Assembly: GCA_016748015.1 (NCBI GenBank)
Contig: JAAOMT010000226.1
Span: forward strand, 1,299,381-1,326,465
DNA: 27,085 nucleotides
Direction of reading: 5' to 3'
DNA from: Geosiphon pyriformis uo1
Taxonomy: Eukaryota > Fungi > Glomeromycota
The notes beneath the pieces are model-generated. The model did not search any database, was not told the DNA's origin, and saw only the letters and a list, made by a program, of their open reading frames with translations. This document shows positions 2,028-27,085 of this stretch, one piece after another. The position numbers and the translations under genes are program-made. The first letter of the stretch is position 1. Each line of letters starts with the position of its first letter.

Positions 2028-2844
2028 TTCAAAAGTCTTAAAATTCAAAACATTAGCAAGACAAGAACGGTGTTCTTTATTTTATTTCCGTTGAACTGAC
2101 TGTTTGTTTAGTGTATGGTTTAGGGTTTTGGCTGTTTGATGACATACGTAACTTGTGATACGAGTCATGTTTCAAAGGTTTAGTGTAGCTCTTATTATAT
2201 TTTCGTCACTTCGGTGTCACTCTGTAGAAGTTGTGATAAATTCGGCTTTTGAAAAACTTATTACCTATAATTAGATTTTTTTTTTTTTAAGTCTTCCCGA
2301 AATAAGTTATACATTTGAACAACACCCGTGTTGAAAATTATAAATTGGCTAATCTTTGAGTTTCTTTGCTTCTTTGCTGGGCTATAATCTTGCATAATTA
2401 AAAATTTTTAAGCGGAAGACGCCATCGAGATAGAAAACTTTTTCCGAAAGCTCTTTATGCAAAAATCCAAAATTGTTAGGCGACGAGCGGAAACGCCAGA
2501 GTAATGAAAATTAATTTTTTGTAACTCACCATTCAAGAAAGGAAATTTATAAGTTAATTAAAAACTTCATTATTAGCTTTAGGCATTGTTTAATTAAGTA
2601 AGGTTTGCACATAAGTATTTTCAATCTCACCATCCGAAATTCATGTCTCACAGATCAAAGTATTGATAAAAAACAAACAATAAAAAGGTAAGTCTTGCAT
2701 CATTCGTGCAACCAAATAATTTTACTTGTGGGAAAAAATAAAAATGAATTTGGACGAATGGCATTGAGTTTTTGCCATTAGTTTACTACTTACAGATAAT
2801 AAAATTTTTGTTGATTTTGCATAGTGTTATCATTTGTTTTCAGT

Positions 2845-2845
<1 letters not shown>

Positions 2846-2890
<45 letters not shown>
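2846..2890 (+). repeat. (AAT)14 microsatellite at the junction of the gene's upstream region and the AT-rich island
   Basis: Perfect AAT run 2848-2889. Confidence 0.95.
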
Positions 2891-3099
2891 TAAATTTTGT
2901 TTTTTTACAAATTTCAACATCTTAAATTCTTATTTATTATTTTACAACATTAAAATTAACATTAATAAAAACCTAATATTAAAACTTTAAATTTTAAAAT
3001 TATATTTTTATTATTATTATTTTATTATGTTTTAATAAAATATAGTCTAATTATTAATTATAACATAAAATTCAAAATTTTTACAATTTACATATTTTT

Positions 3100-4626
3100 T
3101 ATATGTAATTAGTTACTTAAATTGGTTTAAATTAAATCTACAAAAGCAAACTTATTTAATACAGTTATCTTTTTACATAATTATAACCAAATTATTATTA
3201 TTATTAAGAATTAATTTAGCTAATTATATAGTAGTTTTATTTTATATGATTTGGTGCTATTATTGATTATTTTATATTATTATATATTAATTATATTTTT
3301 TTTATGATTAAACCAGTTTTTTAACTTAAATAACAATATAATTTTAAAAACAATAATAATAATTAATTTATAAGTTTTAATTTAAATTTAAAATACAAAT
3401 ATTTCCAAAATTTTGGCAAGTTTTTTATTATAATTTAATTATTTATTTAAATTGAATTAACTTTTAAAAATATAAAAATACAATAAAATAATTAAAAAAA
3501 AAATTTAAAACTTTTTTATAATTTGTTATATATTTTAATTATTGTTTTTTCTAATTTATATAAACAATTTTTTTATAATAATTTTTTTATATAAATAATA
3601 ATTTTTTTGTTAAAATTTTTTAATAATAAATAAAAAATAAACTTAAAATTTTTAATAAAATGTTGTTTTAATTTTTTAATCTTAATTGTTTTTTTTAAGT
3701 AATAGTTAATTTTAAATTATATAATAAAAAAAATTAGTTTTTGCTTTAAATGTTTTTAAATTTTTATAAAAATATTAATATAAAGTTTTTTTAAAAAAAA
3801 TTATCTATTTGACCAAGCTTTAAGTAATAGTTTTGATTTTAAAATGGTTTTTTTATGGTTATATAGTAATAATTAATTTGAATAATTAAGTTGTTTTAAA
3901 TATTTATATTGTAAAAATGAATTTGATAGTACTTAACTTTTATAATTATTATTAGATTAAGCATTATTATATTAAAAATATTATTTATAAAAAAAGTTTA
4001 AAGATTATTTAATTAAAAGTTAAAAGTATTCAGATTTATTTAAAAATAAGTGTGTTAATAATTTGGCAGATAAAATAATATTATCTGGTTTTGTATTATT
4101 AATTAAAATTAATAAACATTTTATTATAGTAAATAATAAAATAGTATTTAATAATATCTAATATATTTAAAATTATAAATTAAACTTATTAAAAAGTTGG
4201 TTCTAATACTTAAATTATAAAAAAATAATTGTTTAATAAAATAAAATAAAATAAATTTTTATTAATATAATATTTTAACTTATATATAACTGTTGGTTTT
4301 ATAAATAAATTTTTAATAAATTTGTATATTTACATAAAAACTATATATAAAAAGCTTTTAATAATTATTTATAAAAAATTGTAATTTAAATCTTATTTTA
4401 TTATTATATATATATATTATAAAAAAATTAAGTTTTTAAATCATGTATTTTTATGTATTATTAATTTTAATACTTACAAAAATTTGCTTAATTTACAGAC
4501 TACTATGTAAAAAAAAAATTAATCAATATTAATATATTGTTTTTTTTAATTTTAATATTTTTTTTCTGTTAATATAGTTAATAATATATTATATATAATA
4601 TTATAGTTCAAGAATTTAATAAAAAA
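3100..4626 (+). mobile_element. Hypermutated remnant of a LINE ORF2 3' part (RNase H, Cys-rich C-terminus, probable tail)
   Basis: 3810-4500 reads TKL*VIVLILK..VLNIYIVKMNLIVLNFYNYY*IKHYYIKNIIYKKSLKII*LKVKS..*KVGSNT..I*YFNLYITVGFINK..IKTIYKKLLIIIYKKL..YIYYKKIKFLNHVFLC. This is collinear with AELQVIVLALK..PNFCNQYWVEHHYIVNVIYNKNLKVSWHKVKD..WHPDLHMAANFTSK..MKTLHHWLPVAIQKHL..CLYCSNVETSNHVFSC of the 8.4-9.9 kb copy. The 5' limit is approximate. Confidence 0.8.
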
Positions 4627-4890
4627 TTATAAATTATTCAATCATATAATATAATTATAATTTTAAAAAAATAATAATTAATATAATAACAAATATTATT
4701 TTATAATAATAGTAAATACTAAGTTGAAATATCAAAAAAAGAGTATTATAATATGTTTTTTCATAAAATTACAAACATATATATATATATAATAGTTTTA
4801 ATATTAAGAAAAATTATTTTTTTAACTTTTAATTTTTCATTTTAATTATTTTTTAACTTTTATTTTTAATAAATATTTAAAGAAATTTTT

Positions 4891-5337
4891 AAATTAAAAA
4901 AATAAGAAATAATATTAAAAACTAAATTATTATAATCAACAATATTAAAAAACTTATTTATATTATTTATTAAATAAAAATATTATTTATAGTTAAATTT
5001 CTTAAATAAATAATCTCTAATTAAGATTATTTATATTATTATTATTTATTAATAAAAACTTATTATAAAATTAAAAAAGCACTAAAAACTATTAATATTT
5101 TATGTTTTTAAATTAAAAAAACACTTTAAGCAATTGCAAAATTAGTTTTAAAAAAGATCTCAAAACAATAAATAGATTTTAATTTAGTTTTTAGAAAAAA
5201 ATATATAATTATATAATTAAAAATTAAAAAATAATTTATATTATAATATTAAAAAAAAGTTTTTAATATAAAATTAGCATTATTATGCAAATAAAATTAA
5301 AAAAATAAGAAATAATATTAAAAACTAAATTATTATA
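4891..5337 (+). repeat. Exact 44-bp direct repeat (4891-4934 and 5294-5337)
   Basis: aaattaaaaaaataagaaataatattaaaaactaaattattata occurs twice, 403 bp apart. Confidence 0.85.
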
Positions 5338-6399
5338 TTAACAATTAATATATTAAAAAAACTACTATATAATAATAGTTTTATATAAAAACTTGGTTTT
5401 TAAAAAATAATTATAAAAAACCAAGTTTTTTTTAATAATAATAAATTAACTATTTTTAAAGTAGTTATTTATTATCATATTAATATTTAGTTAATAAAAA
5501 ATAATTACAAAATATTATTAGAAAAATATAACTTATTAATAAATAATAATTATGAAAAAAAAAATATGTTTTATTAAATAAAATTATATATTTATTTAAT
5601 ATTAATAAAACTTTAAAAGTTTTTTTGGTATTTATGTTTTATGTTTATTTTATGCTAATATTATCAGTTAAAAATTTAATAAACTAAATTAAATTAAACT
5701 TTAAATATTATTCAATTTGGTTTAAATTATAACCAAATTTTTAAAATAAATTCAATTTGAGTTTAAAATTAAATCTTTTTAACAAGTTTAAATTCAGTTT
5801 AAATCTGGTTTAAAGTTTACAAACTTGTTTAAGTATGATAATTAATATATAAAACTATATATATAACAATTTTATTTTTTAATTTACCAAAATAAAAATA
5901 TTGTATAATATTATTAAAGATTTAAAATCTAAAATAACAAAATTTAATAATCTAAATAGTCCAAATATTAATTTTTTTAGTAAATATAGTTTTTAAAATA
6001 AAATATAAAACTATTTTAATAAGTTTAAATAAACAAAAAAAAAGCTAAATATATAGTTTCAAAATATATATATAAATTATTTTTTTATAAAACTATAAAT
6101 ATTATTAAATTTTTATAATACTATTTAAAAATTTTTTATTAAATAGTATTTAAATTATTATTTTTATTAAAAATTTAATATTTAAGCATATTAAACTCAA
6201 TTTTTTTATCTTATATATATGATTCATAATTACTTAAAAATTTAAAAATTATTTGTTATTTTTAAACATGTTTTTTTATAAATAAAAATATAATTGTTGA
6301 TATAAATTTTGTTTGAAATTTAGCCAAAATTTTTGTTTAAGTTTGATTTAATTTAATAATTTGATTAAACTTAGATTAAATTAAATCAAATATTAAAAC

Positions 6400-6583
6400 T
6401 TTATTGTCAATAATATATTTGTTTCTATAATTTTATAGTATTATCTTAATTAATTTAAGTAATTAATTATATATAGAAAAAACATAAACTATATTTAGTT
6501 TAAATATTTGTTGTTATATTATACTATATAGTAATTAGGTTTTACTTATTAAATATTAATAATAAATAAATAGATAAATAAAT
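6400..6583 (+). mobile_element. Hypermutated LINE 3' end (ORF2 stop, 3' UTR, A-rich tail)
   Basis: 6436-6555 aligns with the 3' UTR of the full-length copy (12157-12035 reverse complement), differing mostly by C->T and G->A. Confidence 0.85.
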
Positions 6584-8421
6584 TTTTTTGATATTTTTAA
6601 TAATTATTATTTTGTTTATTAATAAAATGCTTTATTTTTATAAATTTTATATTTTATAGAAAACATTAAATATTTATATATAATTTATTTAAATAATATA
6701 ATATAATTTTAGTGTTTAATTATAAAATATTAATTGAAAATTTTGTTAATTTTAAAGATTTTTAATATATATAAAAATTTTTGATAGTTTTTTTAAGTAA
6801 TTTATTTATAAAAAGTTTTTTTTATAAAAAACAAAAATATTAAAATTTTTAAAATATTAATATTTATAATTATAATAATATTTATTATTTTTTAATTGTA
6901 TTATATAAGCTGTTTTTAATTGTAATTAATCTAATTATAATATTTAAATATAATCAATAAAATTTAGTATTGTTTTTTTAAATTTTTAATAAGCTAATAA
7001 TTTTTAATAAAATTAATTTTAAAATATATTTCTTTTTTATTAAATTATTATAATATCAAATTATTTGTTATAATAGTTAAATTACTAAATTGTTTTTTAC
7101 TATTTTTAATTATGTTTAAATTAATTACAAATTTTTAAAAAAATAAAAAATTTAATATTTTTTAATTATTATGATTAAAAGTAATTAATTTAAGTTATTA
7201 AAATTTCAAAAATATTTATGTTAATTATATTAAAACATAAATAAAAAAAAATAAGTAATTTTAATAGAATTTTAATTTATATATATTAAAATTTTAATAA
7301 TATTTTTTTTAAATCAAAATTACTTATATATATATATATTTTTAGTTTTATAAAATAATTTTAAAAATGTTAATATTTTCTTAATTGTAAATATTTTAAT
7401 ATTTAAAAAAAATTAATCTTATAATAAATTTTATTAATAAAAGTTTAATCAATTTAGATTTCAAAAAAACCAATTTAATATTTATTATAACAATAGTAGT
7501 TTTTATATATAATTTTGTACTAATATTATAATTTATAAAAATTTTGAAATTAATTACAAATTTTATTGATATTTTAAAAATATATATAAAAATATTTTAT
7601 AATTTAAAGCTAAATAATTTAAATCTTAATATTTAAAACAATATTAACAATTAAAAATTTTTTATTAATTTATAATTTCTTTTTTAAAGTATTAATTTTA
7701 ATAATAATAATATCTAAATTTTTATAAAAACCAATTTAATAATAACATATTTTAATTATTAAACAGAATTAAAAGATTAAAAATAAAACAAATATAATTA
7801 TATATTTAAAAACCAGTTTAATAAACTTAAAAACAATATAATTAAATAAAAATTTATTAATTTGGTTTTAAAATAAAAAAAACTAATATTATTTTTCTTA
7901 ATAAAAATTAACCAATAAACCAAAATAATATTTAAAAAAAAATTTTTATAATTAGAAATAAATATACTGTACTGTTATTAGCCAAAAAATTTTAATTTTA
8001 ATTTTTTATTATTGTTTTACAAATTTAATTTAACATTAAAAATTTTGTTAAAAATATTATAAAAAACAACAACAAAAACAAAATTAAATATAAAAAACTT
8101 AACAATTTTAAAAATAAAAAAGTAATTTAACAAGTTTAATTTATATAACAATATTTAAAAAAGTTTAAATATAAACTTTATACAAAAAAAATTAATATTG
8201 TATTTAATAATTAATTTTAAACCAAAAAAACTAAAAAACAATTTTAATATAAACAAATTTAATTTTTATGGTTTTATTAAATATTAAAATAAAAACTTAC
8301 TAAAAAACTTTTATTAATTTACATATATTTTTTAAATATTATTAAAAAAAAAATTTTTAGTTTTTATCTAATTTAAATTAATTATTTAAAATTATATATA
8401 AAAACTATTAAGATGTTAAAA

Positions 8422-9755
8422 TTGTTTCTGTCTGTGATCATCTCTCACAAATTGGTGCTAATAGTTTGTTAGTGTATATAAATGGGTCTCTTAATGGTCT
8501 GGACACAGCTGGTTATAGAGCTGGTGCTGCTGCTTTTTTCAAGGACATTGATTTGAATTTAAGTATTAGTGTATTGAGTTTGATATTATCTACTTTGGCA
8601 GAGTTGCAGGTTATTGTACTGGCTCTGAAGTGTATCCCTTCAATGAGCTCTGTTAAATTGTTTTTAGATAGCCAATCTGCTCTGGATGTCTATAGATCAG
8701 AATTGGGTCTGACATATCCCAACTTTTGTAATCAGTATTGGGTAGAGCATCATTATATTGTCAATGTTATTTACAATAAGAATCTGAAGGTCAGCTGGCA
8801 TAAAGTTAAAGATTATTCTGGTGTTTTAGGGAATGAGCACGCTAACATAATTGCTGGTGACACTTTTCTTTCTAGTTGGCATCTTCCTTCTTGCTTGGGT
8901 CAATGCTTTATAATGGCTGATAGTGGTGTTGTTTCAAGCAATTTCAGATATTTTGTTCATAATATTTATTATTTGGTTTGTTGTACACACTGAAAGGTTG
9001 GTTTTGGTTCCAGGTTTTTGGCAGACAGTTTGCTTTCTGAAGTTGATTGGCTCCATTTATCTTTGGTTTGGCACCCTGACTTGCATATGGCTGCCAATTT
9101 TACCAGCAAACTCTTGGCTAATGCATGTACTTATTTCATGAAAACTCTACACCACTGGCTGCCAGTTGCCATTCAGAAGCATCTTTATAATAGACTCTAT
9201 TCAAGTGTTTTGTGCTTATATTGTAGTAATGTGGAGACATCAAATCATGTGTTCTCTTGTAAGATTGATGATTCTACTTAATGTCAGTTATTGGAATCTC
9301 ATGTGAACTTCTGGAAGGCAACTTCTAGTCTTTCTCATTCTTCTTCAGGTGTATTACAACTGTTATCATTCTGTGTTTCTGACTCCTCTTTGTCCATGGC
9401 TCTTTATAAGGGTTTTGTTTTTGGTGGTTGGTTTCGCAAAGCAGTTACTGTCTTTCAAAATCCCAAAGTTGCTTGTTTGGAAATTGTCAAATTTGTGCAC
9501 TCTCTTAGTCTTGCTTTTAGGAGTGATGTCTGGTCAGTTTGTGCTAAACATTGTGCTTATATGGAGAAAAAAGGATTAATTCCTCTTGATGGCTTGGTTC
9601 TCATCTTGGTTTCTGGTTTGGCCTTAAGATTGTCAGTTATGATGGTCAAATTGCTTGATATTGCCAATGCTTTTGGTGTTTATTTTGGCTTTCACAAATT
9701 TTGTTTGTTTTTTTCAGGCATAAGTAACTTAGTTTCAGTTCACATAGCTGTATAG
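8422..9755 (+). pseudogene. LINE ORF2 C-terminal part (RNase H plus Cys/His domain), with premature stops
   Basis: ORFs 8466-8993, 9018-9281 and 9291-9755 share one frame, separated by in-frame TGA/TAA. Confidence 0.88.
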
Positions 9756-9887
9756 TGTTGTTTTGATCAGTCTAAATAACTGGTCATATATGGAAAATAC
9801 ATGATTCATGCCTAGTATAGATTATTTCTTTGATGTATAGCACTAGGTAGTGTTTGGACCTTACTTGTAAAGCTAATAAAAAAAAAA
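8422..9887 (+). mobile_element. 5'-truncated LINE (RNase H to poly(A)) with a 12-bp TSD AA(G/A)ATGTTAAAA at 8410-8421 / 9884-9895
   Basis: RNase H (VYINGS..LAELQ..FLDSQ..WHKVKDYSGVLGNEHAN), C-terminal CLYC..NHVFSC, stop at 9755, ~120-nt 3' UTR, AATAAA running into an A-tail, and a flanking duplication. Confidence 0.92.
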
Positions 9888-10140
9888 TGTTAAAAAAACA
9901 AAATTTTTTAACATTACAAAAAAATTTAAATATAAACTTGAAAAAATATTTACTTATTTATTGTTTAACTTTTTTTGTTATTTAAGTAATTAAAAAAAAC
10001 AACAAAAAAAACAGTTAATTTTTTTATAATTAAAAACTTTAAAACTCTTTAAAATAAAACTTAAATAATTTTAAAAATTCAAAATAATTATATTAAATCT
10101 ATTTTTATATGTTGTTTTAATAAAATTTTAAAAAACTCTC

Positions 10141-11760
10141 TTATTTTATTTTTATTTTTATTTTTTATAAGTAAAATTCAATTACTATTTAGTATATAAA
10201 ACCAGACTAAATAACTTAGACTAAATATAACTTATGTATTTACTACATATAACTAGTCATTTAAATCAGATAAAACAATACTATACACTTATATAAATAT
10301 TAACAGTATTACTTAACTCATAAAAAAAAGAATACAACATATACCTGCCAAAACTAACAGCAAAAAATTTAATATATCAAACAAACAGATCATTTATCTA
10401 ACAAATATCTTATAAAATTACAAAATAATCCAGATATTATACTACTATCATCAATCAAACCAGCTTTTTTTATATTTATTTATGTTTAAATCTTACAAAC
10501 TAAATCTTTAAATAATGCTTCTTTATCAAATGTTTTACCAATTTAATTACTGCTATAATAGTTTTTTTTTTGAATATCACAATAGTCTCTTTATACTAAT
10601 TTCTTAACACAAAGTCTTTGCAAATCACAGTATACAATCTTATGTCTAATAAACACTTGGAAATAGTCTTTAGAATAATAATAATAAAATTATAAACACT
10701 TACCAAAGAGACCTAAACAGCTAAAGCTCCTATCAAAATTTTTTCACAAATATTAGCATTATTAACACAAGTAAAAATATAATCTGAAATTTAATCTTAT
10801 TACAAAATAAACACAAAATTCCAGAATACAATTTGTCATATAATTTTTTCTTAACCATTATTAACAGCTGTTTATGCATGATTTTCATTAAATAAATACA
10901 CAAATTGGCCAATTCTTTGTTAGTAAACTCAGACAGCATATGTGAATTAGGATACTAAATCTGTATAATAAACACTTAGTTTATTTTTTTAATTAAAGTA
11001 CAAAAGACTACATTATAATCAGAACTAGCTTTCTAATAAGCATAACTAATAAACTTATAAATATTATAAACAAAATAACAAATACAACTGTGTTTTTAGC
11101 CACTACATAATATTTACTTATATCAATAAATAATAAAAAGAAAAAAACAACAGCCACTTTTGCCATCAAGTCAGTTTTAATATTGCCTAAAACATCTAAA
11201 TGATTCTTGACTTTTACTTACTCAACTAAGAAATCTTTATTTTTTATTAAATTAACAATATGTCTTTTTTTTAATTAGCACTAATTGTAAAAATTAAGTG
11301 TAGTAATTTCAGTCTTAAAAATACAAACATTAATAGCAGTTTAATTGTCTAAATACATAATAACTATACAAGAAAAAGAAACACATTCTAAAAACAAAGT
11401 AACAGCCTATAATTTAGTTATTGTAGAAGACAAAAGCCTATAAACAATAGCATTAATGCCTATATTTATAGCTGGAAAATATGTTATAGTCTTATAAGTA
11501 ATTTTAGCTAAACTCATATTTTTTAAAGACTTATCCATGTATATATTAATAGCTTCTAACTAAATCTTAAACAAATTTTTATATACTTCTAAAAACTTAC
11601 TAAAATTTAGAATGTTTGTATTAAAAAAATCATTAACTTCAACAAAACTTGTTTTTAAAGTATTTTTATTATGCAAAAATTATAAAGTTAAAACAAACTA
11701 ATAAAACACAAAATCCCTAAGATCTATTTTATTTAAAACTACAAAAATTGTTTTAAACTA
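10141..11760 (-). mobile_element. Older 5'-truncated LINE copy, heavily C->T/G->A mutated (~20-25% GC), tail-to-tail with the 8.4-9.9 kb copy
   Basis: Minus strand reads VYMDKSL..LLSSTITKL*AVTLFLECV..YLDN*TAIN..*VKVKNHLDVLGNIKTD (RNase H) and ILCLFCNKI. Stop at 10283-10281, followed by the family 3' UTR and a (TAAAAA)n tail. Confidence 0.88.
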
Positions 11761-12154
11761 ATAAAAAATTGACTTATTATAATATTATGTTTGATTTTTT
11801 TATTGTTTTTATTATTGTTATTTAATAAATATATTTTAATTATTATTTATTATAATACAATTATAAAAAAATTTAAAATAAATATAGTTTATATTTTTTA
11901 TATATAATTAATATATTAAAATCAGTTTTTTTTATAAATAATAAAGCTTTAATTTTTTTGTTGGTTTTATAATATTGATATTTAATATTACAGATAATTA
12001 AAAAAAATATTGGTTTTTTTTTTTTTTTATTATGCTTTTAATGAGTGAAGCCCAACCACTATCTAGTACATAGAACCAAACTAAGAGGCTCAAACTAAAT
12101 GCAGCTCACACATTTTCTACATGTGACTAGCCACTCAGGCCAGACAAGGCAATA

Positions 12155-15100
12155 CTACACACTAATACTAACACACAGACTACTATCCAAACCAGAGAAA
12201 AAAAAACAAGACCTGCGATGGCCAAAACTAACAACAAAAGAGTCAGCAACACTGAGCATTCTTACTACCTTATCAGATAACAAAGAACCCAAGTAGTAAG
12301 ACAAACCTGAAAACAAACTATTATCTCCAACCAAACCAGCTTTCTCTATTCTCACCCTAAATGCCGACCTCACCAATTAGGCCTTAGAGCGATGCAGTTC
12401 AACTAAACACTCAACAAAGCCAACCACAGCACCAACAGTCTCCTTTCTATCATTAAAAATTCCCACAGCTTCAGCATACCATTCCCTTAGCACAAACCCT
12501 TTACACAAGACTGAATACAATTCAACATTCACAGAACACCAACCAAGAGATCGCAAAACAACAAAAGGCAACAAGCCATAAAGACTGACTATGAAAAGCC
12601 AATCTGTGGATGCTGCAGCCAAAACTTCCTCATGAATCTCCACATCATGAGAACATATGAAAACATGATTTGGTAACTCCACCTTACAACACAGTAAGCA
12701 AAGCACATTAGAGTAAGACCTATCATATAACTATTTTCTAACCATCACAGGAAGCTGTCGATGTACAGTCTTTATCAGGTACGTGTGAAGACAGGAAGAC
12801 CTCTGACTAGTAAAACCAGCAAGTATATGCAAATCAGGATGCCATACTCTAGTGGTAGCACCCCAATCTACAGCCTTAATTAGCACCTCAGGAAGCACAT
12901 CATGGCTAGATCTCACTTTCTATTGTGCACGACAAATAGATCTATACAAATCCCAAACAAAATGACGAGCATTGCCAGACACTGATGTGTTCTCAGCTAC
13001 CAAAAATTGCTCCCAGATACTGACAGGCAAAGACAGATGAGAAAAAGCAGTGTCACCAGTAGCAGCTTCAGCCTTAACATTGCCAAGAATCCCAGAATGT
13101 CCCTTAACCTTAATCCATCATACAGAAAAATTCTTCTCATAAATTAAATTAAAAATCTGGCATCTTTCCAACCAACAAGAGGAGCAAAAATCAGGCGCAA
13201 ACAATAACATCTCAGAAACACACACATTAATAGCTGCCTGGCTGTCAGTATGCACGACCACTATACAAGAAGATAGAACACACTCCAAAGACAAAGCAAT
13301 GGCTTGCAGTTTGGCCATAGTAGAAGACAGCAGATCATGAACCCTAACACTAATACTCAAATCAATAGTAAGAAAATAAGCAGCCACACTACCAGCAACA
13401 TTAGCATGACCAAAATTTTTTAATGAGCCATCTGTAAAGACCTCAAACAAGTCAGACCAGATCTCATGCAGCCCACCAAGAATCACAGAAAAATTCTTGG
13501 AATCCAGAACATTCAAACCAGAAACACAAGTAGACTCCGCAAAACTGGCCAATGAGATGCCAGCATCACAAAAAAAATCAGACACAACCCTAAACCAGTG
13601 AGAAACAAGACCCCTTGAATCCAATCTCTTTCAGGATCTAAAAGTCATCTAATTTATAATGTATCCCTTTCTATTAAACAATCTATCACCAAAAGCCACA
13701 CCAAAATGCATTAATGAATGAACAGAATTGAAGTGCAGAGAACTCCCCAGAATAGAAGACACAGGAAAACTACCAGGACTGCAAAATGCATTGGGCAAGC
13801 CATTTGACAAAAACAACTCATTGCACAAAAGAATCTTAACCACACCAGCCAGAAAATTGTTCACAGGACTAACACGCAACTTAACAGAAAACTGCAAAGG
13901 ATTCAAAGGAGACTACCCCAGAACCTGCAAATCGAGACATCTGTGCTCAAACAATTGGCCAAGCACTCTGGAAGAATTGGAAAATGAAATCAAGACAGCC
14001 AACTTCCCTTCAGACTGCACCTGCTCAAAAGACTTCAGACTATATAAAGATGGATGACATAGAGTCTTACTAGGGAAGTCACAAAATAAACCAGCCTTAG
14101 ACTTAAGCCTCTTCTTCAATATTACATTCTATTTGCAGCAAATATTTGACAAAACAAAACTGAACTGAGTGTGATAGCTGACAATAGACTACAAGACAGC
14201 TGACATCAAATACAAAAACTGTTTATCAATAATAGCTTTCCTGAAAACCACATAGCAAAGAAATGAACATCAAAATGAGCCTTGGCCATGCTCAGCTTTA
14301 AAAGTCTCTTAGTAAACAAAAAAATTCCCAGATAACAATGAGCTTCACCCTTTTTGGCTATCAAAATAAGCAGACCACTAACACTCAAAGAAGCAACTCT
14401 AACATCCAAATTAATTGGAATGGCCATGGTTTTCTTATTGTTAATGGAAATGTTATTGACAACAAAAAACTCACTTGCAATGTCCAAAATATTCTGAGTA
14501 GCAGCTTGACAGTTCCCAACTCAAATTGTATCATCAATGAAAGCACCAGCCACAAAATAAGAAAACAACCCACCATTGCTCTCAATCCAACCTGATTTCG
14601 AAACAAACTTAGAACATATCCAGTACCCAAAAAACTGTTTATGTCTCTTGACTTCACATAGAAGTAGATCGTAAAAAATCCTCCACAAAAGTGGTGAGAA
14701 GATTTTACCTTGATCTAAACCATCGCAAACACAATATCTATCAGAGAAACCAAAATCAGTCATCACCTTGTTGAATTTACTCTTGTGTATATTACCAAAA
14801 AATTTGATGAACTTGTTACACATCTTAATTCTCTGTAAGCTAGCCCTCAAATGATGTCACCCAACAGAATCATATGCTTTTTGCATGTCTTGCAGGACCA
14901 GCCAAAGTTCCCTATTCTTCTCGAGAGCGTTCTTTACAACTGTCCCAATAGCAAACACCAGAGACTGTGTGGATGTGCCATTCAATACCAAAAAATTGTT
15001 ACCATAGAGAACACTAAACTTACTATACATGAATAAAATCTGATTAGACAAAACCTTAGAAAGAATCTTCTTGGCAGTTTCGATTAGAGTAATAGAATGT

Positions 15101-16845
15101 GTGTTTGTAAGAACACCATCCCAATTATATGGCTTAAGAATCATTAACACCCAGGCCTTTTGCCAAAAAACAAGCACCCTGCCAGCAGACAAGCAAGCAT
15201 TCAGCAAAGTCAACAGACAACTCAAAGCCACCTTACCACCATGCTTCCACAGTTCATTAGGAATACCAGACAGACCAGCAGCTTTGCCATTAGGCAGACC
15301 ACCCACCACCAAAAGCAACTCCTCTATACCAATCTCTTTCATGACACCAGAAAAAGTCTTGTCTTTTACATAATCCAATGGCATGTACTGGTGGACCCAG
15401 CAATCAGGCAACAATAGAGGTATAGTGTACACTCTTGTCCACCCCACCATAATTTCATCCACCTTAGATTTCATCTCCTTGGGCTCCAAAACCAAGTTAA
15501 CATCAACCACCAAATGGTCAAGGACCACCTTGCAAAAAGGCCAGTCCAAAACACTTCTGATTATGCTATCTTTATTAGAAGCAAAACTCTCTATGCACTT
15601 GTCTATAGCATTCCAAATAGACACCTCTTCAGCCAATCTTGACTCAAACATTTTTGATTTCCTATACTCTTTGCAAACTAATGACAAGTGTTTAAAAAGA
15701 ACCACACTATTCCTACCCAAGATAACCAAGTCAGAAAAAACGCAAGCTTTGGCTTCATCCAAAGTGAACCATTTTCTTACAAAACAATCAACTCCAAGCA
15801 TGTCACCAGAACAAATCTTACTAACAATCTTGGCAATAAGCAATTCAAGCCCAAAGAACTTTGAAGAATGCCTATTTCTAGAGCACTAAAATTTACTAAA
15901 CCAATGTTTCGAAAAAACCTCATCAGCTGAATCAACTATTTCTCTTTTCAAAATTGCCCATATAGTATCCAAATCACCACCAGCTTTGGCATCAGAGAAG
16001 AGGTCTCTGACCAACTGAAGCCTAGCTGAAACACAATCCTTAAACTTAGTCCACTTGGCAACATCCGTATCTTTAATCCTGAACTTTCAACAATCTTTGT
16101 TAGCCTGCTTGCACAAACTATTCAACTGAACATCCAAGAGCCTACTCAAACCAACCAACACCATAACAGCACTGTAATCTATATCAAAAAATTCAGAAAC
16201 AAACCCAATACAATGCTTAGCAACAGCAAAAGACAGATTTTCACCAACTAAAATGTAATCAATAGTCTTTTCAACTTCCCTCAAATTGCACCATATAGGC
16301 ACCCCAGCCAAATGATGGCCAGTAAAAAAATTAATCAGACTCAAACCCAAGCAAAACCTGTAACTTGTGCTCCTCCCAGACCCGTTTTTATTGAAATTTC
16401 CACCCAATATAATGAAAGTGCTGGTATTAACAGTCTTGGCAATGATAGAATTAACCTCAGATGCCTGACCAAAATGAACACCAAAAGAAGCACCAGCATA
16501 CAAACTGAGCACAGTCACTGAGAGCTTGTCTTTAAACAATAGTCACACAAAAACAATCCGACCAGGAATCTCATCAATCTTAGAAACATGGTGAGCCAAA
16601 GAATTATTCATGATCACAGCAACACTGGCACCAAAATAACCAACATCCAAACCAGAAGTAAAAATCTGAACTCCATCAAACTTATTCTTGATCCATGGTC
16701 CAGCAGAAAACCTCAACTTTGTTTCAGTAACAAAAGAAACCATATTCCCAGAACTTACATGCCAACAAACAATGTCTGTTTGCTTAGCAGGAACATTGAT
16801 ACCTCAAACATTGCACATTGCAAATTTCCAAACCAAATTGCTCAT
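12155..16845 (-). pseudogene. LINE ORF2: APE endonuclease, reverse transcriptase, RNase H, Cys/His C-terminus; many nonsense mutations
   Basis: MSNLVWKFAMCNV*GIN..VTETKL..LGGNFN..KTIDYIL (APE); GKAAGLSGIPNELWK..LQDMQKAYDSVG..GLDQGKIFSPLLW..AFIDDT..YLGI (RT); VFTDGS..HTDSQ..*IKVKGHSGILGN (RNase H); CLLCCKVELPNHVFIC. Confidence 0.93.
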
Positions 16846-18788
16846 TGGGATGGAAAATGAACAGAAGAGTCCGAATTAGAACACAAGAGATCCAATCTCA
16901 CCAGAACTGAACTGATAGAAGTCTCCAAAGCAGACATCTTAGATTCTAAACCACCTACTTTAGAGGTAAGAACCTTTGAGCTGCTAGAACTAAGAACAAT
17001 AGCAGATTCATTAGCACCAGAAAAAGAAGGAACAAACAAAGTCAATCCACTATTTAGAGCCATATCTGAATTCTCAACCAAACCTACATATGCAAAAACA
17101 GCTGGAGGAGAAATACAAGAAAGAGGCACCAATGGCACCAATTTAACAAAGCTCAGTTTTTTCATAATACTGGAAATCTGATTGGCTAAGAGCTCTAAAA
17201 AGTGTTCCAAAGATGCCAAACAATCACCCAAATCAGAGATATCAAGAGACCCAGAGACCATTAAAAGAGGTTTTACACCCAGAATTAAACCAACACCAGA
17301 AGTGACTGAAGAAGCCACACAAGAGGAAGAGTTGCCAGTGATCTGGGCCCATGTTTTACCACCAAAGGAAACTGAATGGGTAATGAGAGCATGCTTCTTC
17401 CTATATATATTAGCCAGACAAACCCAATCTTGAGAGGTAATCACATGCTTGCCATGACCACCAGAATTCTCACCCACAGAACAGACACCAGAAACATGAC
17501 CAAACTGTTTACATGTCACACAACAGGCCAGAAAAAGACCAGCCCAATGCAAACCCACACCCTTGAAGATCAGAGCCGAACCAATAGCAGCCAATTTGGA
17601 TGCTTCATTAACAAAACAAATGACAGCACACCTATCACAAACATACATAACCAGATTATGGCTAATAACACAGATCTTCTCACCATATGAATCCAACAGA
17701 CCAGAAAGATCATGAACAGTAGTGCCAACTGGAAGAGTATAAAGCAATGCCTGATGCTGATCTCTGGATACCCACGCTTGTTTATCACTGATTGTCTTTG
17801 CCATACAAACAGAATCTTTTTCCACAAGCACAGACTATCTAGCTACAACCAAATCAGCCATCTCAGATGATTCATATTCCACCAGGGCCTTTTGCCAAAG
17901 ACCAACAAGCTGCAACTTAACAGAAATAATCTTACCAAACTTGGAAAACACTGCCTCAATCGCTGATCTGAGAAGATCCACTAAGATCTCCCTGACAATT
18001 ACTTCCCGATCTGAACAACTGTTTACCTTCCTGATATTATCATTAACAAGAATCTTTTCATTAATTGCCATTTCCTTAACCTTTTTTAAACTCAACTCTG
18101 AAGTAAAAAACAATTTTATTATGCCTGGAAATTTTGAGAAAGTTGACACCTCCCCAAAACCATCAATCTGATAAAAAATTTTTTTTATTGCCATCAACTT
18201 ATTAACATTTGTTTTGCCAGTAACAGCTGACACTTCAATATCCAATGTGAATGATTTTGTTGAATTAAAACTCCGTTTTATCATGGCACGTAATTTGAGC
18301 AGCAGCAACTGATTGGACTCACCACTCACACGAAAAGGAAGTTCCAACACACCATCATCATCACTCATATGTTTAAACACAGACTGCTTTGGCAGGTTGT
18401 CTAGTGCACATGTTCGTGTGCAAGTCCTCTTTGGTGTTGCTTCATCTATGTCATCATTCTCACCTGATCCAGCATAACAGGCTTCTTCGGCTACTGTGGT
18501 CTCCACATACTCAGCATCCGAAAGATCACTCACACTGCTAGAAACACTACCAACCTCACTTCCCCAGAACACCACAGACTTGGCACCAGTACCTCCAACA
18601 TTCTCCAGGCTCAGAGAGCCAGCAGACAAGTTGACCACATTACTGGCTGCAAACTTTTTCAGCTTCTTGAATAATGGACCACGAGAATAAATACTATCTA
18701 TACAAGCTTTCTTCTTACCACCAGACTGAATTCTCAACCTAGCTGAACCAGCACCAGAACCACTGGCAGAAGAGTCTTCCAGTTTTAT
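16842..18788 (-). pseudogene. LINE ORF1 (RRM-like region, CCHC knuckle, C-terminal coiled coil), one in-frame stop near 17835
   Basis: VFSKFGKIISVKLQLVGLWQKALVEYES (RRM-like); CVTCKQFGHVSGVC (CX2CX4HX4C); KVGGLESKMSALETSISSVLVRLDLL. The start is inferred as ATG GAA mutated to ATA AAA at 18788; an alternative ATG lies at 18887. Confidence 0.85.
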
Positions 18789-18934
18789 AACAACAAATAA
18801 AGGCGTAGGAAGAAAAATAACTACAAAAACAAAGGGTAAAAGGTAAAAAAAAAAGCTATTTCTGTGACAAACTTTCTTTGCTCCCATTGTAGTCAGAGGA
18901 TTGACGAGAGAAAAAAGTTTTTTAATATTGGTTT

Positions 18935-21900
18935 ATAAATTAATATTTTTATATTGTTAATTAATCTAAAAGTTTTAAATAATTTAAAAGTTTTAATAAG
19001 TTAAATTTTTTATATAATGAACAAAAATTTATTAATAATAATTAACAATATTTAATATTTAACCTTTTTAATATAATAACTAATTTATTTTAGTATTTGT
19101 TTTTTTTAATAAGTAATTTAATAAATTAATTTTATATTTATTAAACAATATAATTTAATACTTTTTTTAATTAATTAATAATACAAAATATTATATATAT
19201 AAAAAAGAAATAATAAATAAAAATTAATATTTTATTAATAATTATAATTAAAAGTTATTGTTTTAATATTGTTAAAAATATTTAAATTAATATTAATATT
19301 TATTAATAATAAATAAATTTCAATAAAATAAATAGTAATTATAGAATTTAAATATTAAATAATCTAAATAATAATTTTATTTAAAAAAACATTTATTTTA
19401 AGTATTAAATTTCTAACTATTAAAGTTATTTAATAAATTAAATTGTATTTAATTGTATTTTTTTGTTTTTAATAATAATATTATATATATAAATTTTTCG
19501 AATTTTTAATAATTTTTACACTTTTTTTAAAATTTTTAAAATTTTTAAAATTCTTTATATTATATGATTTAATAATTTTTTACTATATTATTGACTAATT
19601 TTATGTTATATTAACTGTTATTTAATTTTCAAATTATTTTATAAATAATATTATGTTTTTTTTTAATATTAAATTTTAATAAAATTTACTTTTTTAAATA
19701 AACTTAATAATTTTTTTTTATAAAGTTAAAAATTTTTATTTTCAGTTTTTTAAATTGCAAATTGGTTATTTTTTCTAGTTAATTTATTTTAATATTTTTA
19801 TAACTGAATATAATGGTATTATATTATATTTTTAAAACATTAAGTATAATTGATATATGATTTTTAAGTAGATAATTAACTGCTTTTTTTAATAAAATAT
19901 TTTATTTATTGTATTATTGTTTTGTCAAATACTCTTTTGAATTTTGTTAATATATAAAATTTAAATATTTAGTTATTGTTTTAAGTAATAATAACAATAT
20001 ATTATTAGAAATTGTTTTTTTTTTTAATTTTTTTAATTGTTTTTTATTAATTTTTTAATTTAAATTATTATTAGTAAGTTTTTAAAAGTTTTTTTTACTT
20101 TTAACAATTTTTTACATAATTATTAGATTATATTATTTGTTTTTTTTTAAGTATTTTTATAACAATTTTTTTGGCTATTAATTATTATTTTTATGTCTAA
20201 TTTTTTATTTTTTAATATTTAAAACAGTTATTAAGCATTTAAATAAATATTGTTTGTAATTTTTATTTTTATTGATTATTTTATTATATTTTAATAATAT
20301 TTATATACTTTTTTAATTTTATAATATATTAGTTTTACTAATAATAATTGGTTCTAAATCTTATAAAATTTTATCTAATTTTATTAATATTTTTTATATT
20401 TTTAATTATAATATATATAATGTTTTAATATAATATAGTTTTAGTTAATTATTATGTATTGCTTTAATTAATTATAATTTATATGTTTTATTTCTAAGTA
20501 TTTCTTTAATATAAATTTTCTATTTTTATTTTGGTATGATATAATAATACTTTGTTAATTTTAATTTTAATTGGTTTATTTAGTAATTAATTATTATGTT
20601 TTTTTTATGTTTTAATATTGTTAACTGTTTATTTTTTTTTGTTTTAATGTTTTTATTAAGTTAAATTTTTGTTTTAATAGTGTTTTTTTATAACTTTAGT
20701 TATTAATTTAATTAAATATATTATTTTTATTTTAACTAATAATATTGTTATTTTATTATATATTAATTAAATCAATTTTAATTTAATTAAATAATTGTTT
20801 TATTTTAATTGGTTTTAGTAGTTTATTTAATCTTATTTCTTTTTTTTTGCCAAATATTACAATTTTGTATTTATTAGATTATATTTAAATATTTAGTTAA
20901 TTAATAATATAATTTTTTGGTTTTTTTAATTATTACTTTGCAATTAAAATATTTTGTTGTTAAGTTTAAATATATATTGAACAAAATTGTTTTTTTTGTT
21001 TTATTATTATTTTCAATAAATTGTTTAACTCTTATTAATTTTTTTAATATAATATATTTTAATAAATAAAATAGTATCTAAATTAATATATTTTATTTTG
21101 TTTATTTTAAGACAATTTTTTTAAATTACTAAATATTAATATAATATAATTATTAATAAATTTACTTATTTATTTTGTGTTTTTGTAATATATAATTAGT
21201 GTTTTTTATTCTTATTTTATTTATAATAAGTTATTAATATTTTTGTTTTTGTTTTTTTTTATAATAAAATTTATATTTAAATAACAAAAATACTGTTTTT
21301 TATTTAATATTTTTATTATTTACCAATTTTTTTTGTAATAATATTAAACTTTTGTAATTAATATAAATATTAAATTATTTTTTAAAATATTTATTTTATT
21401 TTATAATTGTTTAATAAATTGTTAAATATTCTAATACTAAAATTTTATAGTTTTATTTAGCTAAACTTAAGTTTTTGTTAACATATATTATTAAAATGCT
21501 CTTATTTATCTGGTTTTTATTGTAATATTATTATTTTTAATACTGTTTTAAATATATTAATTACAATTATGAACAATTTATTATAGTCAGATTAAAACTA
21601 AAGCTTTAATTAGCTTTTGTTTTAACTTTTTAAAAGCTTTTTGTGTATATTTATTTATTTATAATTGGTATTTTTGTTTACAATTAATAAAACAGCTAAG
21701 TAATTATTAAAAAGTTTAGATAAATTGTTAATAATATTCAGTTAGTTTCAGAAATTTTTTTAGTTCTATTAAATTTTTAAATTTTATAAAATTTTTTATT
21801 TTTTTGAATTAGTTTTAATATTATTTTTTCTATAATATATTTTAAAAACTTAAATTTTGTTTTTTTAAAAGAATATTTGTTGGTATTAAGTTTTAATTTA

Positions 21901-22570
21901 ACTTTTTAAAACTGTTTAAATATTTATTGTACATATACTTAATAAAAAAAAGTTATAAAACACTTAATAATATTATTATTTTGTGTTTTATAAATAATAA
22001 AAATATTTATAAAAATTTATTTATAATTATATTAGCTATTTATAAATAACAAAAATGTATTAAAATAATAATTATTAATTAAAACAAAGATATAATTAAC
22101 AATATTTAATTCATGTTTTTTTATTAACTTAAACTTTTTTGAAATTTTTTTTTAATAAACATAAATATTTAAAAATCTAAAATTTAATATTAAAATTTGA
22201 ATGATTTAAAACCATTTTAATTTACTTTTTAAATAACCAATACAATTATCCAATTTGAATCTAATAAAGTATTTATAAGATTATTTACAAAAACAACTCA
22301 AAAAATAAAATTTATATTTCAAAATTTATTTCTTATATTACAAGAAAAATAACAAGTAATTTCATATAAATTTAATTAATAGTGTATTTAAACATATTAA
22401 AAAATGTATTAAAAAAAAGAATAAATTAATTAGTTATTAAGTATTAAATAAAATAAAAAGTTAAAAAAACAATAAAATATTTTATGATTTTTTTCTGTAA
22501 AGTATAGTAAAAATATTTATTAAAATCTTTTAAAACATGTTAATATTATTAAATAATTAATTATTAATTA
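18935..22570. other. Extreme AT-rich block (~9% GC), at least partly hypermutated TE remnants
   Basis: Hand count 20041-20640: 54 G+C in 600 nt, no CpG. Contains the Gypsy pol remnant. Confidence 0.85.
20390..21930 (-). mobile_element. Hypermutated remnant of a Ty3/Gypsy pol (RT C-terminus, RNase H, integrase HHCC and C-terminal region)
   Basis: LKLNTNKYSFKKTKFKFLKYII (cf. LKLN..KC.FG..E..FLGH.I); KNLIELKKFLKLTEYY*QF at 21778-21722 (cf. ELRGFLGLTGYYR.F); YVNKNLSLAK*NYKILVLEYLTIY*TI (cf. YASRSL..AE.NY...LE.LAI.WA); FNIYINYKSL (cf. YTDHKSL); TTKYFN..LYY*L..NCNIWQ (integrase Zn finger); KPIKIKQLFN*IKIDL (cf. PF.RIGIDL). Order is RT-RH-IN. Confidence 0.88.
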
Positions 22571-22685
22571 TTGAAAAATTGCCAGTATTACCTGAGTAGA
22601 AAAACCAAAAAGCTATGAGAAAATGTAACAAAAAAACATGACAAGAAAAACACAGTATAACTCGAGGTAATATAGAATAAACACA

Positions 22686-22745
22686 AGCAATAGCTAGTAA
22701 TAATAAGCAATAGCTAGCAATAATGAGCAATAGCTAGCAATAGTA
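22686..22745 (+). repeat. 3 x 20-bp tandem repeat (AGCAATAGCTAGCAATAATR) in the LTR
   Basis: agcaatagctagtaataata / agcaatagctagcaataatg / agcaatagctagcaatagta. Confidence 0.92.
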
Positions 22746-23072
22746 AAACAATTGAAAACAATCCTATAAAACCAAAAGAATGTATAAAAGCAAGTAGTTG
22801 TAGAAGTTGAAAAGACAGTTAGTTAGCAATCAATTTTACTTGGTATTATACTTATCATATATCCATAGTCCAAAATACAATAAATATCAAAACCAAAAAA
22901 AAAAGAAATCTAATTTACCAATTTATGTTCTCCAATATTACAGATTTCAATTAAAAAAATCAAAATCAGTATTTTTTACCTTTGTTTCAGAACAGATGTC
23001 ATTAGCATAAACACCTCAAACTGTAACAATTTGGACCAATCACTCTTGATCACAGTGATTGATGGGAACTAA

Positions 23073-23153
23073 TTCTTTTTCTTTCTTTTCTTTTTCTTTT
23101 CTTTTTCTTTTCTTTTCTTTTTCTTTTTTTATTTTTCTTTTCTTTCTTCTTTT
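23073..23153 (+). repeat. Polypyrimidine (TTTTC)n-like tract in the LTR
   Basis: About 80 nt almost entirely T/C. Confidence 0.9.
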
Positions 23154-23540
23154 GTTTGGAGTGGCAACATAAGAAAATCAACTGTCTTGGAATAGATTTT
23201 ATGATAGCCTGGTAAAAAAAGGAAGCTCCTCCTAAGTTTTGGATATTAACATTATCTTAGTAGCTTACTAGAAGGGCGAAAAGACAACACTGGACCCTAA
23301 TGACTGTGCTTATTAGCACAAAAAAGAAAGCCCACATTTGCGAAAAACATTGCAATTGACAAAAAACAAACTCTGTGCCTTATAACCAAAAAACTCAATG
23401 GGTAAATTTACATCCAAAAATAGATTTTTAGAGACTGATAACACTGATACAGTGGAAAAAGCAGACAATCTTGAAAGATAACCCTAAAAATAAAGCACCA
23501 AACATTATCATCATACTCTATCCAATTTATTTGTAACATT

Positions 23541-23557
23541 TGGTGCTTTTTGTGAGG
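23541..23557 (+). promoter_or_regulatory. Primer-binding site TGGTGCTTTTTGTGAGG
   Basis: Lies right after the LTR end. The pattern TGGTGC....GTGAGG resembles the complement of elongator Met or Ile(UAU) tRNA 3' ends; the tRNA identity is not established. Confidence 0.75.
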
Positions 23558-23559
23558 TT

Positions 23560-26500: not shown

Positions 26501-27085
26501 ACATGCCGTGCTTTGCATGTGGCAAGATTCTGCCCAATAAAAGACTTTGGAATGATATGCCTGGCAGAGGAAAAACATGTGATGAAACTTGTCAGTACAC
26601 CATATTAATCAACAATTGGGTACAAAAAGGAATCCCTATTAAGAATGCTTAGAAACAAGCACTCAATAAGCTGGACAGTTATCCACACAATGATCATGAA
26701 ATCTGAAGAATGACAAGTGCCAAAGCCAAAGATGCCATGTCCAAAAAAATACGAGAAATCAAGGACAACCCTTGAACACCCGAATATAATGGATCTGACT
26801 ATTTTATGGATGATTTTATCATAGATGACTCTGATGTATTTTAGAACTGATATTAAGAATTGGCCCCAATCCAAAAAGAGAAAAAACAGTGGTTAGTTGA
26901 TCTAAATACCAAACTATGCAATTACTGCTTAATTCCTTGCCACTTTTAATACTGTAACAAGTGTGATCTCATGTTCAATTTATCTCCCAGAATCCTATAT
27001 CTAATCACCAAATTACTTGAGCCTGAGGAAGAAGAGAAATTACTTGCCAGGAACATGTTATTTCAAAAGCTGAATCAGACTACCA
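23560..27085 (+). pseudogene. gag-pol polyprotein remnant (gag, zinc knuckle, aspartic protease, Cys-rich region)
   Basis: IAKLEKFSGEKNNAYL*IVEAEKAI..ALPFFLTRTVNSWYQSL (gag); CYYCQKPGHIACNC at 25136-25177; IKLILNSRSASNI (DSG motif mutated to NSR) near 25800. Many stops, few frameshifts. Confidence 0.87.

Follow-up and report, generated by a model that had tools for sequence, protein, structure and literature searches.

AT-rich blocks in Geosiphon pyriformis are probably transposon copies eroded in place by one-way C-to-T decay

Repeat-induced point mutation (RIP), a process that in Neurospora crassa and other Pezizomycotina involves RID and DIM-2, changes C:G to T:A in one direction, is confined to transposons, and turns glutamine, tryptophan, and arginine codons into stops. 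In Leptosphaeria maculans it is cumulative to saturation and leaves AT isochores, with bimodal GC content and AT blocks beside normal genes. The mammalian APOBEC3 deaminases inactivate retroelements with a 5'-neighbor preference for TpC and CpC; they work by C-to-U deamination of the single-stranded minus-strand cDNA during insertion, which leaves G>A changes confined to the sense strand. DddA-type deaminases, which are bacterial toxins, work on double-stranded DNA and prefer a 5'-TC context. Transposons of the Pucciniomycotina (Microbotryum, Puccinia, and Melampsora) undergo a TpCpG-specific hypermutation (Horns et al. 2012, PMC3318451). RID is listed for Ascomycota only in a 2026 review (PMC13297926), Dallaire et al. 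detected no signatures of RIP in Gigaspora margarita or in Mucoromycotina, and arbuscular mycorrhizal (AM) fungi and their relatives are described as doing without RIP, with CpG methylation and small RNAs as their means of control (Dallaire et al.; PMC13297926). Here we describe a window of 27,085 nucleotides from contig C657 of Geosiphon pyriformis (Glomeromycotina, order Archaeosporales), in which transposons show RIP-like erosion with a sequence preference of its own; RIP itself has been reported absent from this group. For Geosiphon and the other AM fungi we found neither RIP nor a RIP-like mutation described in the literature searched, which did not include the Current Biology 2021 genome paper.

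The GC content of the window falls to 6–12% in 500-bp windows at 3001–8500 and 19001–22500. Segmentation returned four blocks below 18% GC, at 2832–8402 (8.7%), 9911–10248, 11573–11991, and 18943–22563 (9.3%). When bounded by features, they extend over 2832–8421 (AT block 1, 8.7% GC), 9896–10248, 11573–12005, and 18935–22563 (AT block 4, 9.3% GC), and their edges are sharp. AT block 1 contains no CpG at all, with an observed/expected ratio of 0.53 for TpC and 2.3 for GpC. A bimodal GC content, which the earlier note had proposed as a check, was observed in 200-bp windows across this window and 29 unrelated LINE loci, with modes at 8–11% and 34–38%; in this, in the AT blocks beside a normal gene, and in cumulative action to saturation, the locus resembles the L. 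maculans isochores. Our sample comprised ~280 kb picked by transposon homology. Within the window, alignment reads the AT blocks as relics of LINE and Gypsy elements plus a repeat of ~760 bp. We regard these blocks as the probable final stage of a C-to-T decay that acts in situ and only on integrated copies of Geosiphon transposons.

The single-copy DNA next to AT block 1 offers a control. The host gene, an RRM protein, maps by tblastn exons to 33–2027 on the minus strand with a GC content of 34–44%, and the open reading frame (ORF) at 1131–2048 (−) is 100% identical to the NCBI Geosiphon pyriformis protein G9A89_012680. Its CpG observed/expected ratio is 0.63–0.89. The unique region upstream, 2028–2831, has 31% GC, a CpG ratio of 1.07, and a TpC ratio of 0.92, and adjoins AT block 1. 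A genome search with 1–2831 returned only the self-match, and this whole stretch keeps a GC content of 31–44%, CpG at 0.63–1.07, and TpC at 0.92–1.10 up to the block edge. The claim that the neighboring gene and its upstream region had kept their CpG and normal GC was borne out, and the C-to-T excess of the transposons was not found in the adjoining unique DNA, as far as composition tells.

Because a transition-only process leaves the string of purines and pyrimidines (R/Y) unchanged, we ran the alignments with every G replaced by A and every C by T, which made transitions invisible and set chance identity at 50%; significance is given as z against shuffled sequences. The earlier note had decoded a LINE ORF2 at 3810–4500 and a LINE 3' untranslated region (UTR) at 6436–6555, and both were recovered. 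The 3' part of ORF2, with the RNase H region, is found at 3753–4620 (+), where 3800–4465 has 81% R/Y identity to the GC-normal LINE at 8585–9269 (z = 52). Past a 760-bp insertion the same copy would continue at 5381–5666 (+; 84% R/Y identity to 2410–2729 of sampled locus L006) and end in the 3' UTR relic at 6401–6590 (+), which shows 85–94% R/Y identity to LINE 3' ends (87% and z = 15 for 6421–6590). The pieces are colinear with 1604–2894 of L006, an uninterrupted AT-rich copy, and are best read as one LINE copy split by two later insertions, both now AT-rich. Target-site duplications of these nested insertions, at ~4620/5381 and 5666/6401, were unreadable in the low-complexity AT sequence. 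Compared codon by codon, the LINE relic carries the predicted changes (V>I, E>K, D>N, G>K/N/D, and Q, W, or R to stop). The codon register, first proposed to survive, does so only in part, with two or more shifts inside 390 bp.

Other parts of the mosaic of hypermutated relics in AT block 1 belong to different elements. The insertion at 4621–5380 is a copy of the ~760-bp repeat, which has many genomic matches and a GC content of 8–12% in every copy retrieved. Across nine copies, residual C or G was found in 238 of 744 columns and was fixed in none, which puts the ancestor at 32% GC or more and means that the copies lost their cytosines independently of one another. In this family, C/G was retained at 0.35 where a purine preceded it and at 0.23 where a pyrimidine did (p = 2e-5). 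At 6576–7251 (−), R/Y-collapsed alignment identified an AT-rich relic of an element that survives in GC-normal form at 22975–23634. In AT block 4, a Gypsy pol had been reported at 20390–21930; we could verify it only from 20763, as a relic running from reverse transcriptase to RNase H at 20763–21944 (−) that matches GC-normal Gypsy pol copies (z = 30) with ~80% R/Y identity at aligned sites, or 75–77% by gapped BLAST. The peptide LKKFLKLTEYY*, quoted in the earlier note as an example of decay, is located inside this relic at 21731–21754 (−). Genome-wide, the in-frame stops in 150 RT_RNaseH matches to Gypsy copies are mostly TGA, as TGG>TGA and CGA>TGA predict.

Two GC-normal LINEs in the window served as references. 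LINEa (8422–9886, +) is a 5'-truncated element with 36% GC, an RNase H domain, a poly(A) tail, and a 9-bp target-site duplication, ATGTTAAAA, at 8413–8421 and 9887–9895; it has at least 40 copies in the genome. LINEb (12017–18923, −) is a full-length degenerate element with 39% GC, a CpG observed/expected ratio of 0.16, RNase H and weak RVT_1 matches in fragmented ORFs, a poly(T)/poly(A) tail, and an exact 11-bp target-site duplication, AATATTGGTTT, at 12006–12016 and 18924–18934. Coding remnants, poly(A), target-site duplications, 5' truncation, and many copies mark these two stretches as LINEs, and 12017–18923 was accordingly rejected as the host gene, being a degenerate full-length LINE with RNase H, poly(A), and a target-site duplication. 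Given these intact duplications, both elements inserted into DNA that was already AT-rich, and AT block 4 and 11573–12005 formed one stretch until the insertion of LINEb.

Between the AT LINE relic and LINEa we counted 80 C>T and 94 G>A changes against 5 T>C and 11 A>G, with 15% transversions. The AT Gypsy relic compared with the GC-normal copy in L038 gave 136 C>T and 153 G>A against 27 T>C and 15 A>G (transversions 19.6%), and the relic at 6576–7251 compared with its GC-normal twin gave 70 and 82 against 2 and 15 (transversions 21.1%). Both classes of change occurred on one strand in the LINE and the Gypsy relic alike, as had been claimed. LINEa and LINEb, both GC-normal, differ from each other by 97 C>T, 112 G>A, 97 T>C, and 78 A>G changes, with 20% transversions. 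This GC-normal pair has more transversions than the AT LINE relic shows against LINEa, and symmetric transitions, and the AT state is therefore directional rather than the product of extra age under a normal spectrum.

Ordinary neutral AT-biased decay would make the AT blocks merely old. It can draw on the finding that AT-rich copies in the sample are 5–10% transversions apart from each other and 15–20% from GC-normal copies; the Gypsy relic, for example, shows 19–20% transversions against GC-normal pol copies and 5.2% against an AT-rich copy in L004. AT-rich copies are nearer to each other than to GC-normal copies and so are members of older subfamilies. Their transversion distance from GC-normal copies is, however, not above that between GC-normal LINEs, the change is strongly one-way, the same spectrum recurs in very young copies (below), the boundaries are sharp, and the adjacent single-copy non-coding DNA has 31% GC and its full complement of CpG. 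We consider this explanation already largely refuted and give it hardly any weight; simple old age, named beforehand as an outcome that would overturn the claim, can be set aside for the LINE relic, with transversions of 15% versus 20% between GC-normal LINEs and transitions in one direction.

Younger transposon copies allowed the process to be observed before saturation. Sixteen GC-normal Gypsy copies, whose changes were polarized by taking the column majority as ancestral, have diverged by 0.40% in transversions and 6.2% in transitions, with ~94% of C/G kept. Of 1376 derived changes, 1198 (87%) were C>T or G>A; the rest were 96 transitions in the reverse direction and 82 transversions. CpG (15 sites) accounted for just 46 of the 1198, leaving 96% outside it; action far beyond CpG decay was thereby upheld. 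In the LINEa subfamily (30 copies), transversions stand at 1.8% and transitions at 16.7%; LINEa and the copy nearest to it are separated by 218 transitions and 3 transversions. Copy pairs with 4–5 transversions in 3.3 kb carry 183–243 transitions, and among the youngest pairs transitions outnumber transversions by as much as 45:1. When transitions were regressed on transversions, the intercepts were 6.6% for Gypsy and 14% for LINE. Counts restricted to private mutations were uninformative in the LINE family, where most C sites had changed in several copies. LINEa itself, despite being embedded in an AT block, has 71 C>T/G>A changes compared with a family mean of 65, and the mutational load tracks the family or its age and not the neighborhood.

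The sequence context was read on the 5' side. In the Gypsy copies, the rate per C site and copy was 0.085 after T, 0.060 after C, and 0.036 after A or G (chi-square p = 5e-32), while CpG sites changed at 0.16–0.25, giving the order CpG > TpC > CpC > RpC. By 3' neighbor the rates were 0.048 for A, 0.056 for T, and 0.070 for C, and a pyrimidine at −2 or +2 also went with a higher rate. The LINE family gave 0.197 after T versus 0.11–0.13 after other bases. Saturated sequence carries the same imprint: the observed/expected ratios in the AT blocks are 0.51–0.53 for TpC, 1.3–1.4 for ApC, 1.8–2.3 for GpC, and ~0 for CpG, and 57% of the remaining C stands in an A-C-W context. When LINEb was decayed in simulation at the young-Gypsy rates, the surviving trinucleotides matched those of the AT blocks with r = 0.98 (0.67 for the starting composition), GC reached a plateau near 7%, and the transversion load was of the same order as that between AT-rich copies. 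ACC and CCA (ACCA/TGGT) are the only ones to outlast the prediction, surviving in 2832–8402 and 18943–22563 at 5–8x the level of the simulation (0.050 and 0.057 versus 0.006 and 0.010), which suggests an additional protected motif.

Editing of retroelement cDNA or RNA at transposition, in the manner of APOBEC3, or ultraviolet (UV) dipyrimidine damage in poorly repaired chromatin would each fit a TpC/CpC preference, which resembles both signatures, and Geosiphon lives at the lit soil surface. The 5'-TC/CC preference and the inactivation of retroelements are indeed shared with APOBEC3, yet the strand-specific G>A of that system was not found. The Gypsy copies hold 584 C>T and 614 G>A changes, balanced on the sense strand in every copy. 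There were no strand-coordinated runs in these copies (Stouffer z 0.8) and no tandem CC>TT excess (observed/expected 1.2–1.3 against independent changes). Balanced strands, absent runs, and the lack of a CC>TT excess argue against cDNA editing, single-strand patches, and UV alike. Saturated relics that are nested and truncated would, moreover, need repeated hits in place, unlike APOBEC3 editing at insertion, and no APOBEC-like domain was detected, a blank that counts as weak evidence. Both variants are very improbable. As a working analogy, a DddA-type activity on duplex DNA would yield the strand-balanced, unclustered pattern seen in Geosiphon; unlike that system, which consists of bacterial toxin domains, the Geosiphon genome had no match to PF14428 in a search without positive control.

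Passive decay would need no dedicated mutator: dense 5-methylcytosine (5mC) on transposons, including non-CpG sites, would deaminate spontaneously and be poorly repaired. The Geosiphon data resemble CpG-methylation decay as found in Rhizophagus irregularis and vertebrates, in that GC-normal transposons are depleted of CpG (observed/expected 0.04–0.16), the host gene is not, and DNMT1 is present. CpG is also the fastest-changing site, an intact DNMT1 is encoded in the genome, and changes at single sites on both strands without clustering are what slow chemistry gives. Unlike CpG-methylation decay, the process reaches far outside CpG, where all but the 46 changes lie, and CpG loss alone cannot bring 38% GC to 9%. 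Methylation in Rhizophagus irregularis is reported as CG (Dallaire et al.), DNMT1-type methylation does not predict a 5'-neighbor preference, and the youngest pairs are extreme in their excess of transitions over transversions. This leaves passive decay unlikely, although it is the strongest of the alternatives considered.

Canonical RIP would have a RID/Masc1-type enzyme mutate duplicated sequences in a cryptic sexual phase, with homology as the trigger; RIP is characterized by premeiotic action and by a threshold of length and identity for that trigger. The dominance of C:G-to-T:A change characteristic of RIP was found (87% in young Gypsy copies, 174 versus 16 changes in the AT LINE relic), and as in Neurospora the change is one-way and turns Q, W, and R codons into stops; judged by the composition of the adjoining single-copy stretch, it may likewise be confined to transposons. 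The load is similar across a whole family at any site, as LINEa illustrates, and the large transition intercept at zero transversions together with an overdispersed load would fit episodes. The genome also contains four matches to DNMT methyltransferase domains without RFD or BAH, unclassified (C657:788280-789372, C657:820713-821336, C646:684535-685894, and C692:422414). The context, on the other hand, is unlike RIP: neither CpA nor any other 3' preference of the ascomycete RIP type (CpA in Neurospora, CpA or CpG in other ascomycetes) was found in the 16 Gypsy copies, and Geosiphon reads the 5' side (TpC > CpC > RpC) plus CpG, with no strand-coordinated runs. The near-identical Gypsy copies, at 0.4% transversions, are only lightly mutated, still holding nearly all of their C/G. 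RID is reported from Ascomycota only (PMC13297926), it is not known from the Glomeromycotina, and Gigaspora and Mucoromycotina are reported to be free of RIP signatures. Ordinary RIP in a member of the Pezizomycotina, which would have emptied the original claim of novelty, is excluded by taxonomy and by context. We judge canonical RIP in Geosiphon quite unlikely, and the process is probably RIP-like in outcome without being RID-type RIP. Its nearest likeness outside the Ascomycota is the transposon hypermutation of the Pucciniomycotina, with a 5' T preference and an enzyme not known; there the full TpCpG is the only elevated context (PMC3318451), unlike Geosiphon, where nearly all young changes are non-CpG and transposons are taken to ~9% GC.

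The search for candidate enzymes, which the earlier note had recommended, was productive on the methyltransferase side and blank for APOBEC-like deaminases. At C371:419691-423692 the genome encodes an intact DNMT1, whose domains are RFD, two copies of BAH, and a methyltransferase. The dCMP_cyt_deam_1 profile (CDA fold) had five genome matches, unclassified, a number that fits housekeeping deaminases. The OTT_1508, DddA-like (PF14428), and NAD1 profiles had zero genome matches in searches that lacked a positive control and are not proof of absence, and APOBEC_N likewise had zero matches, with a model that scored only below the cut-off in two control genomes. Two further DNMT1-like loci, C702:1325162-1327926 and C666:678738-681548 (RFD, with or without BAH, and methyltransferase), contain several in-frame TGA, TAG, and TAA stops. 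They may be duplicated host genes struck by the same C>T process, and if so they would bear on the question of a homology trigger.

In-situ decay of integrated copies is the reading that we prefer. Cytosines on both strands, probably of the integrated duplex, are converted singly, site by site, fastest at CpG, next at TpC, then at CpC, and slowest after a purine. Each copy gains its own pattern, and the load accumulates to ~7–9% GC, with mostly ApC-W and GpC remaining. Adjoining single-copy DNA is unaffected as judged by composition, and younger insertions within old AT blocks bear only the moderate load of their family. The agent would be an enzyme, with either cytosine deaminase or methyltransferase-type activity, and methylation, heterochromatin, or small RNA would guide it to the chromatin of transposons. 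A deaminase that reads the 5' neighbor is somewhat more likely than a DNMT. That Geosiphon, and perhaps other Glomeromycotina, possesses a RID-independent defense enzyme that deaminates cytosines preceded by T or C in transposon DNA that is double-stranded and marked by its chromatin is a serious possibility, which we put forward tentatively and at somewhat less than even likelihood.

Several points weigh against this account. The single-copy control consists of composition at one locus that is possibly under selection. In-situ action is deduced from saturation and from contiguity across nested relics. Among copies the C>T load is overdispersed, and it does not correlate with their other changes. 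Intermediate GC windows (20–27%) are much rarer in the window and in L042–L070 than steady exponential decay predicts if insertions are spread evenly over time, a possible sign of insertion bursts or of switch-like acceleration. The sample covers ~280 kb chosen by transposon homology, and the deaminase profile searches did not pinpoint an enzyme candidate, although their blanks are weak evidence.

The remaining features of the window were mapped in the same way. A LINE 3' relic at 10130–11753 (−), identified by R/Y-collapsed alignment, has 22% GC at its center and 11% at both ends. Compared with LINEb it shows 135 C>T and 230 G>A changes, with 59 C and 131 G kept, and a TpC observed/expected ratio of 0.75, and it represents a rare intermediate relic, unevenly eroded. 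A further AT-rich LINE 3' UTR relic lies at 11791–11925 (−), with 88% R/Y identity to 12010–12143. A perfect (TAA)n microsatellite at 2848–2890 stands exactly where the unique promoter region meets AT block 1. The right flank, 22564–27085, has a GC content of 32–35% and yet a CpG observed/expected ratio of only 0.12–0.14, and it includes a CT-rich low-complexity tract at ~23067–23140. A Pfam search of the ORFs in 22564–27085 gave zero matches, and this flank is probably another, unclassified repeat. The window is the final 27 kb of its contig (1299381–1326465 of 1,326,465 bp), and the assembly may break here within a repeat-rich region. Independently assembled Logan contigs of one sequencing run, probably from the source sample, contain 93% of the 31-mers of 7000–12500. 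At this contig level, the concern that reads might fail to support the AT blocks, named beforehand as a refuting outcome, came out in their favor.

If a mutator that is restricted to transposons, works mostly outside CpG, and takes elements to ~9% GC is confirmed, it would add a third layer of transposon control beside CpG methylation and small RNAs in the transposon-rich AM fungi and their relatives, and it would explain the bimodal GC content and the apparently featureless AT deserts of the assembly. Repeat annotation and transposon dating would then be badly biased, with most old transposons invisible to ordinary searches and divergence-based ages inflated by transitions. The 5'-neighbor signature provides a handle for the enzyme search and for testing whether the process is continuous or linked to sex. 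Should a dedicated defense enzyme prove responsible, it would be a convergent and mechanistically new counterpart of RIP and, if its action is episodic, possibly a molecular record of cryptic sex in Geosiphon.

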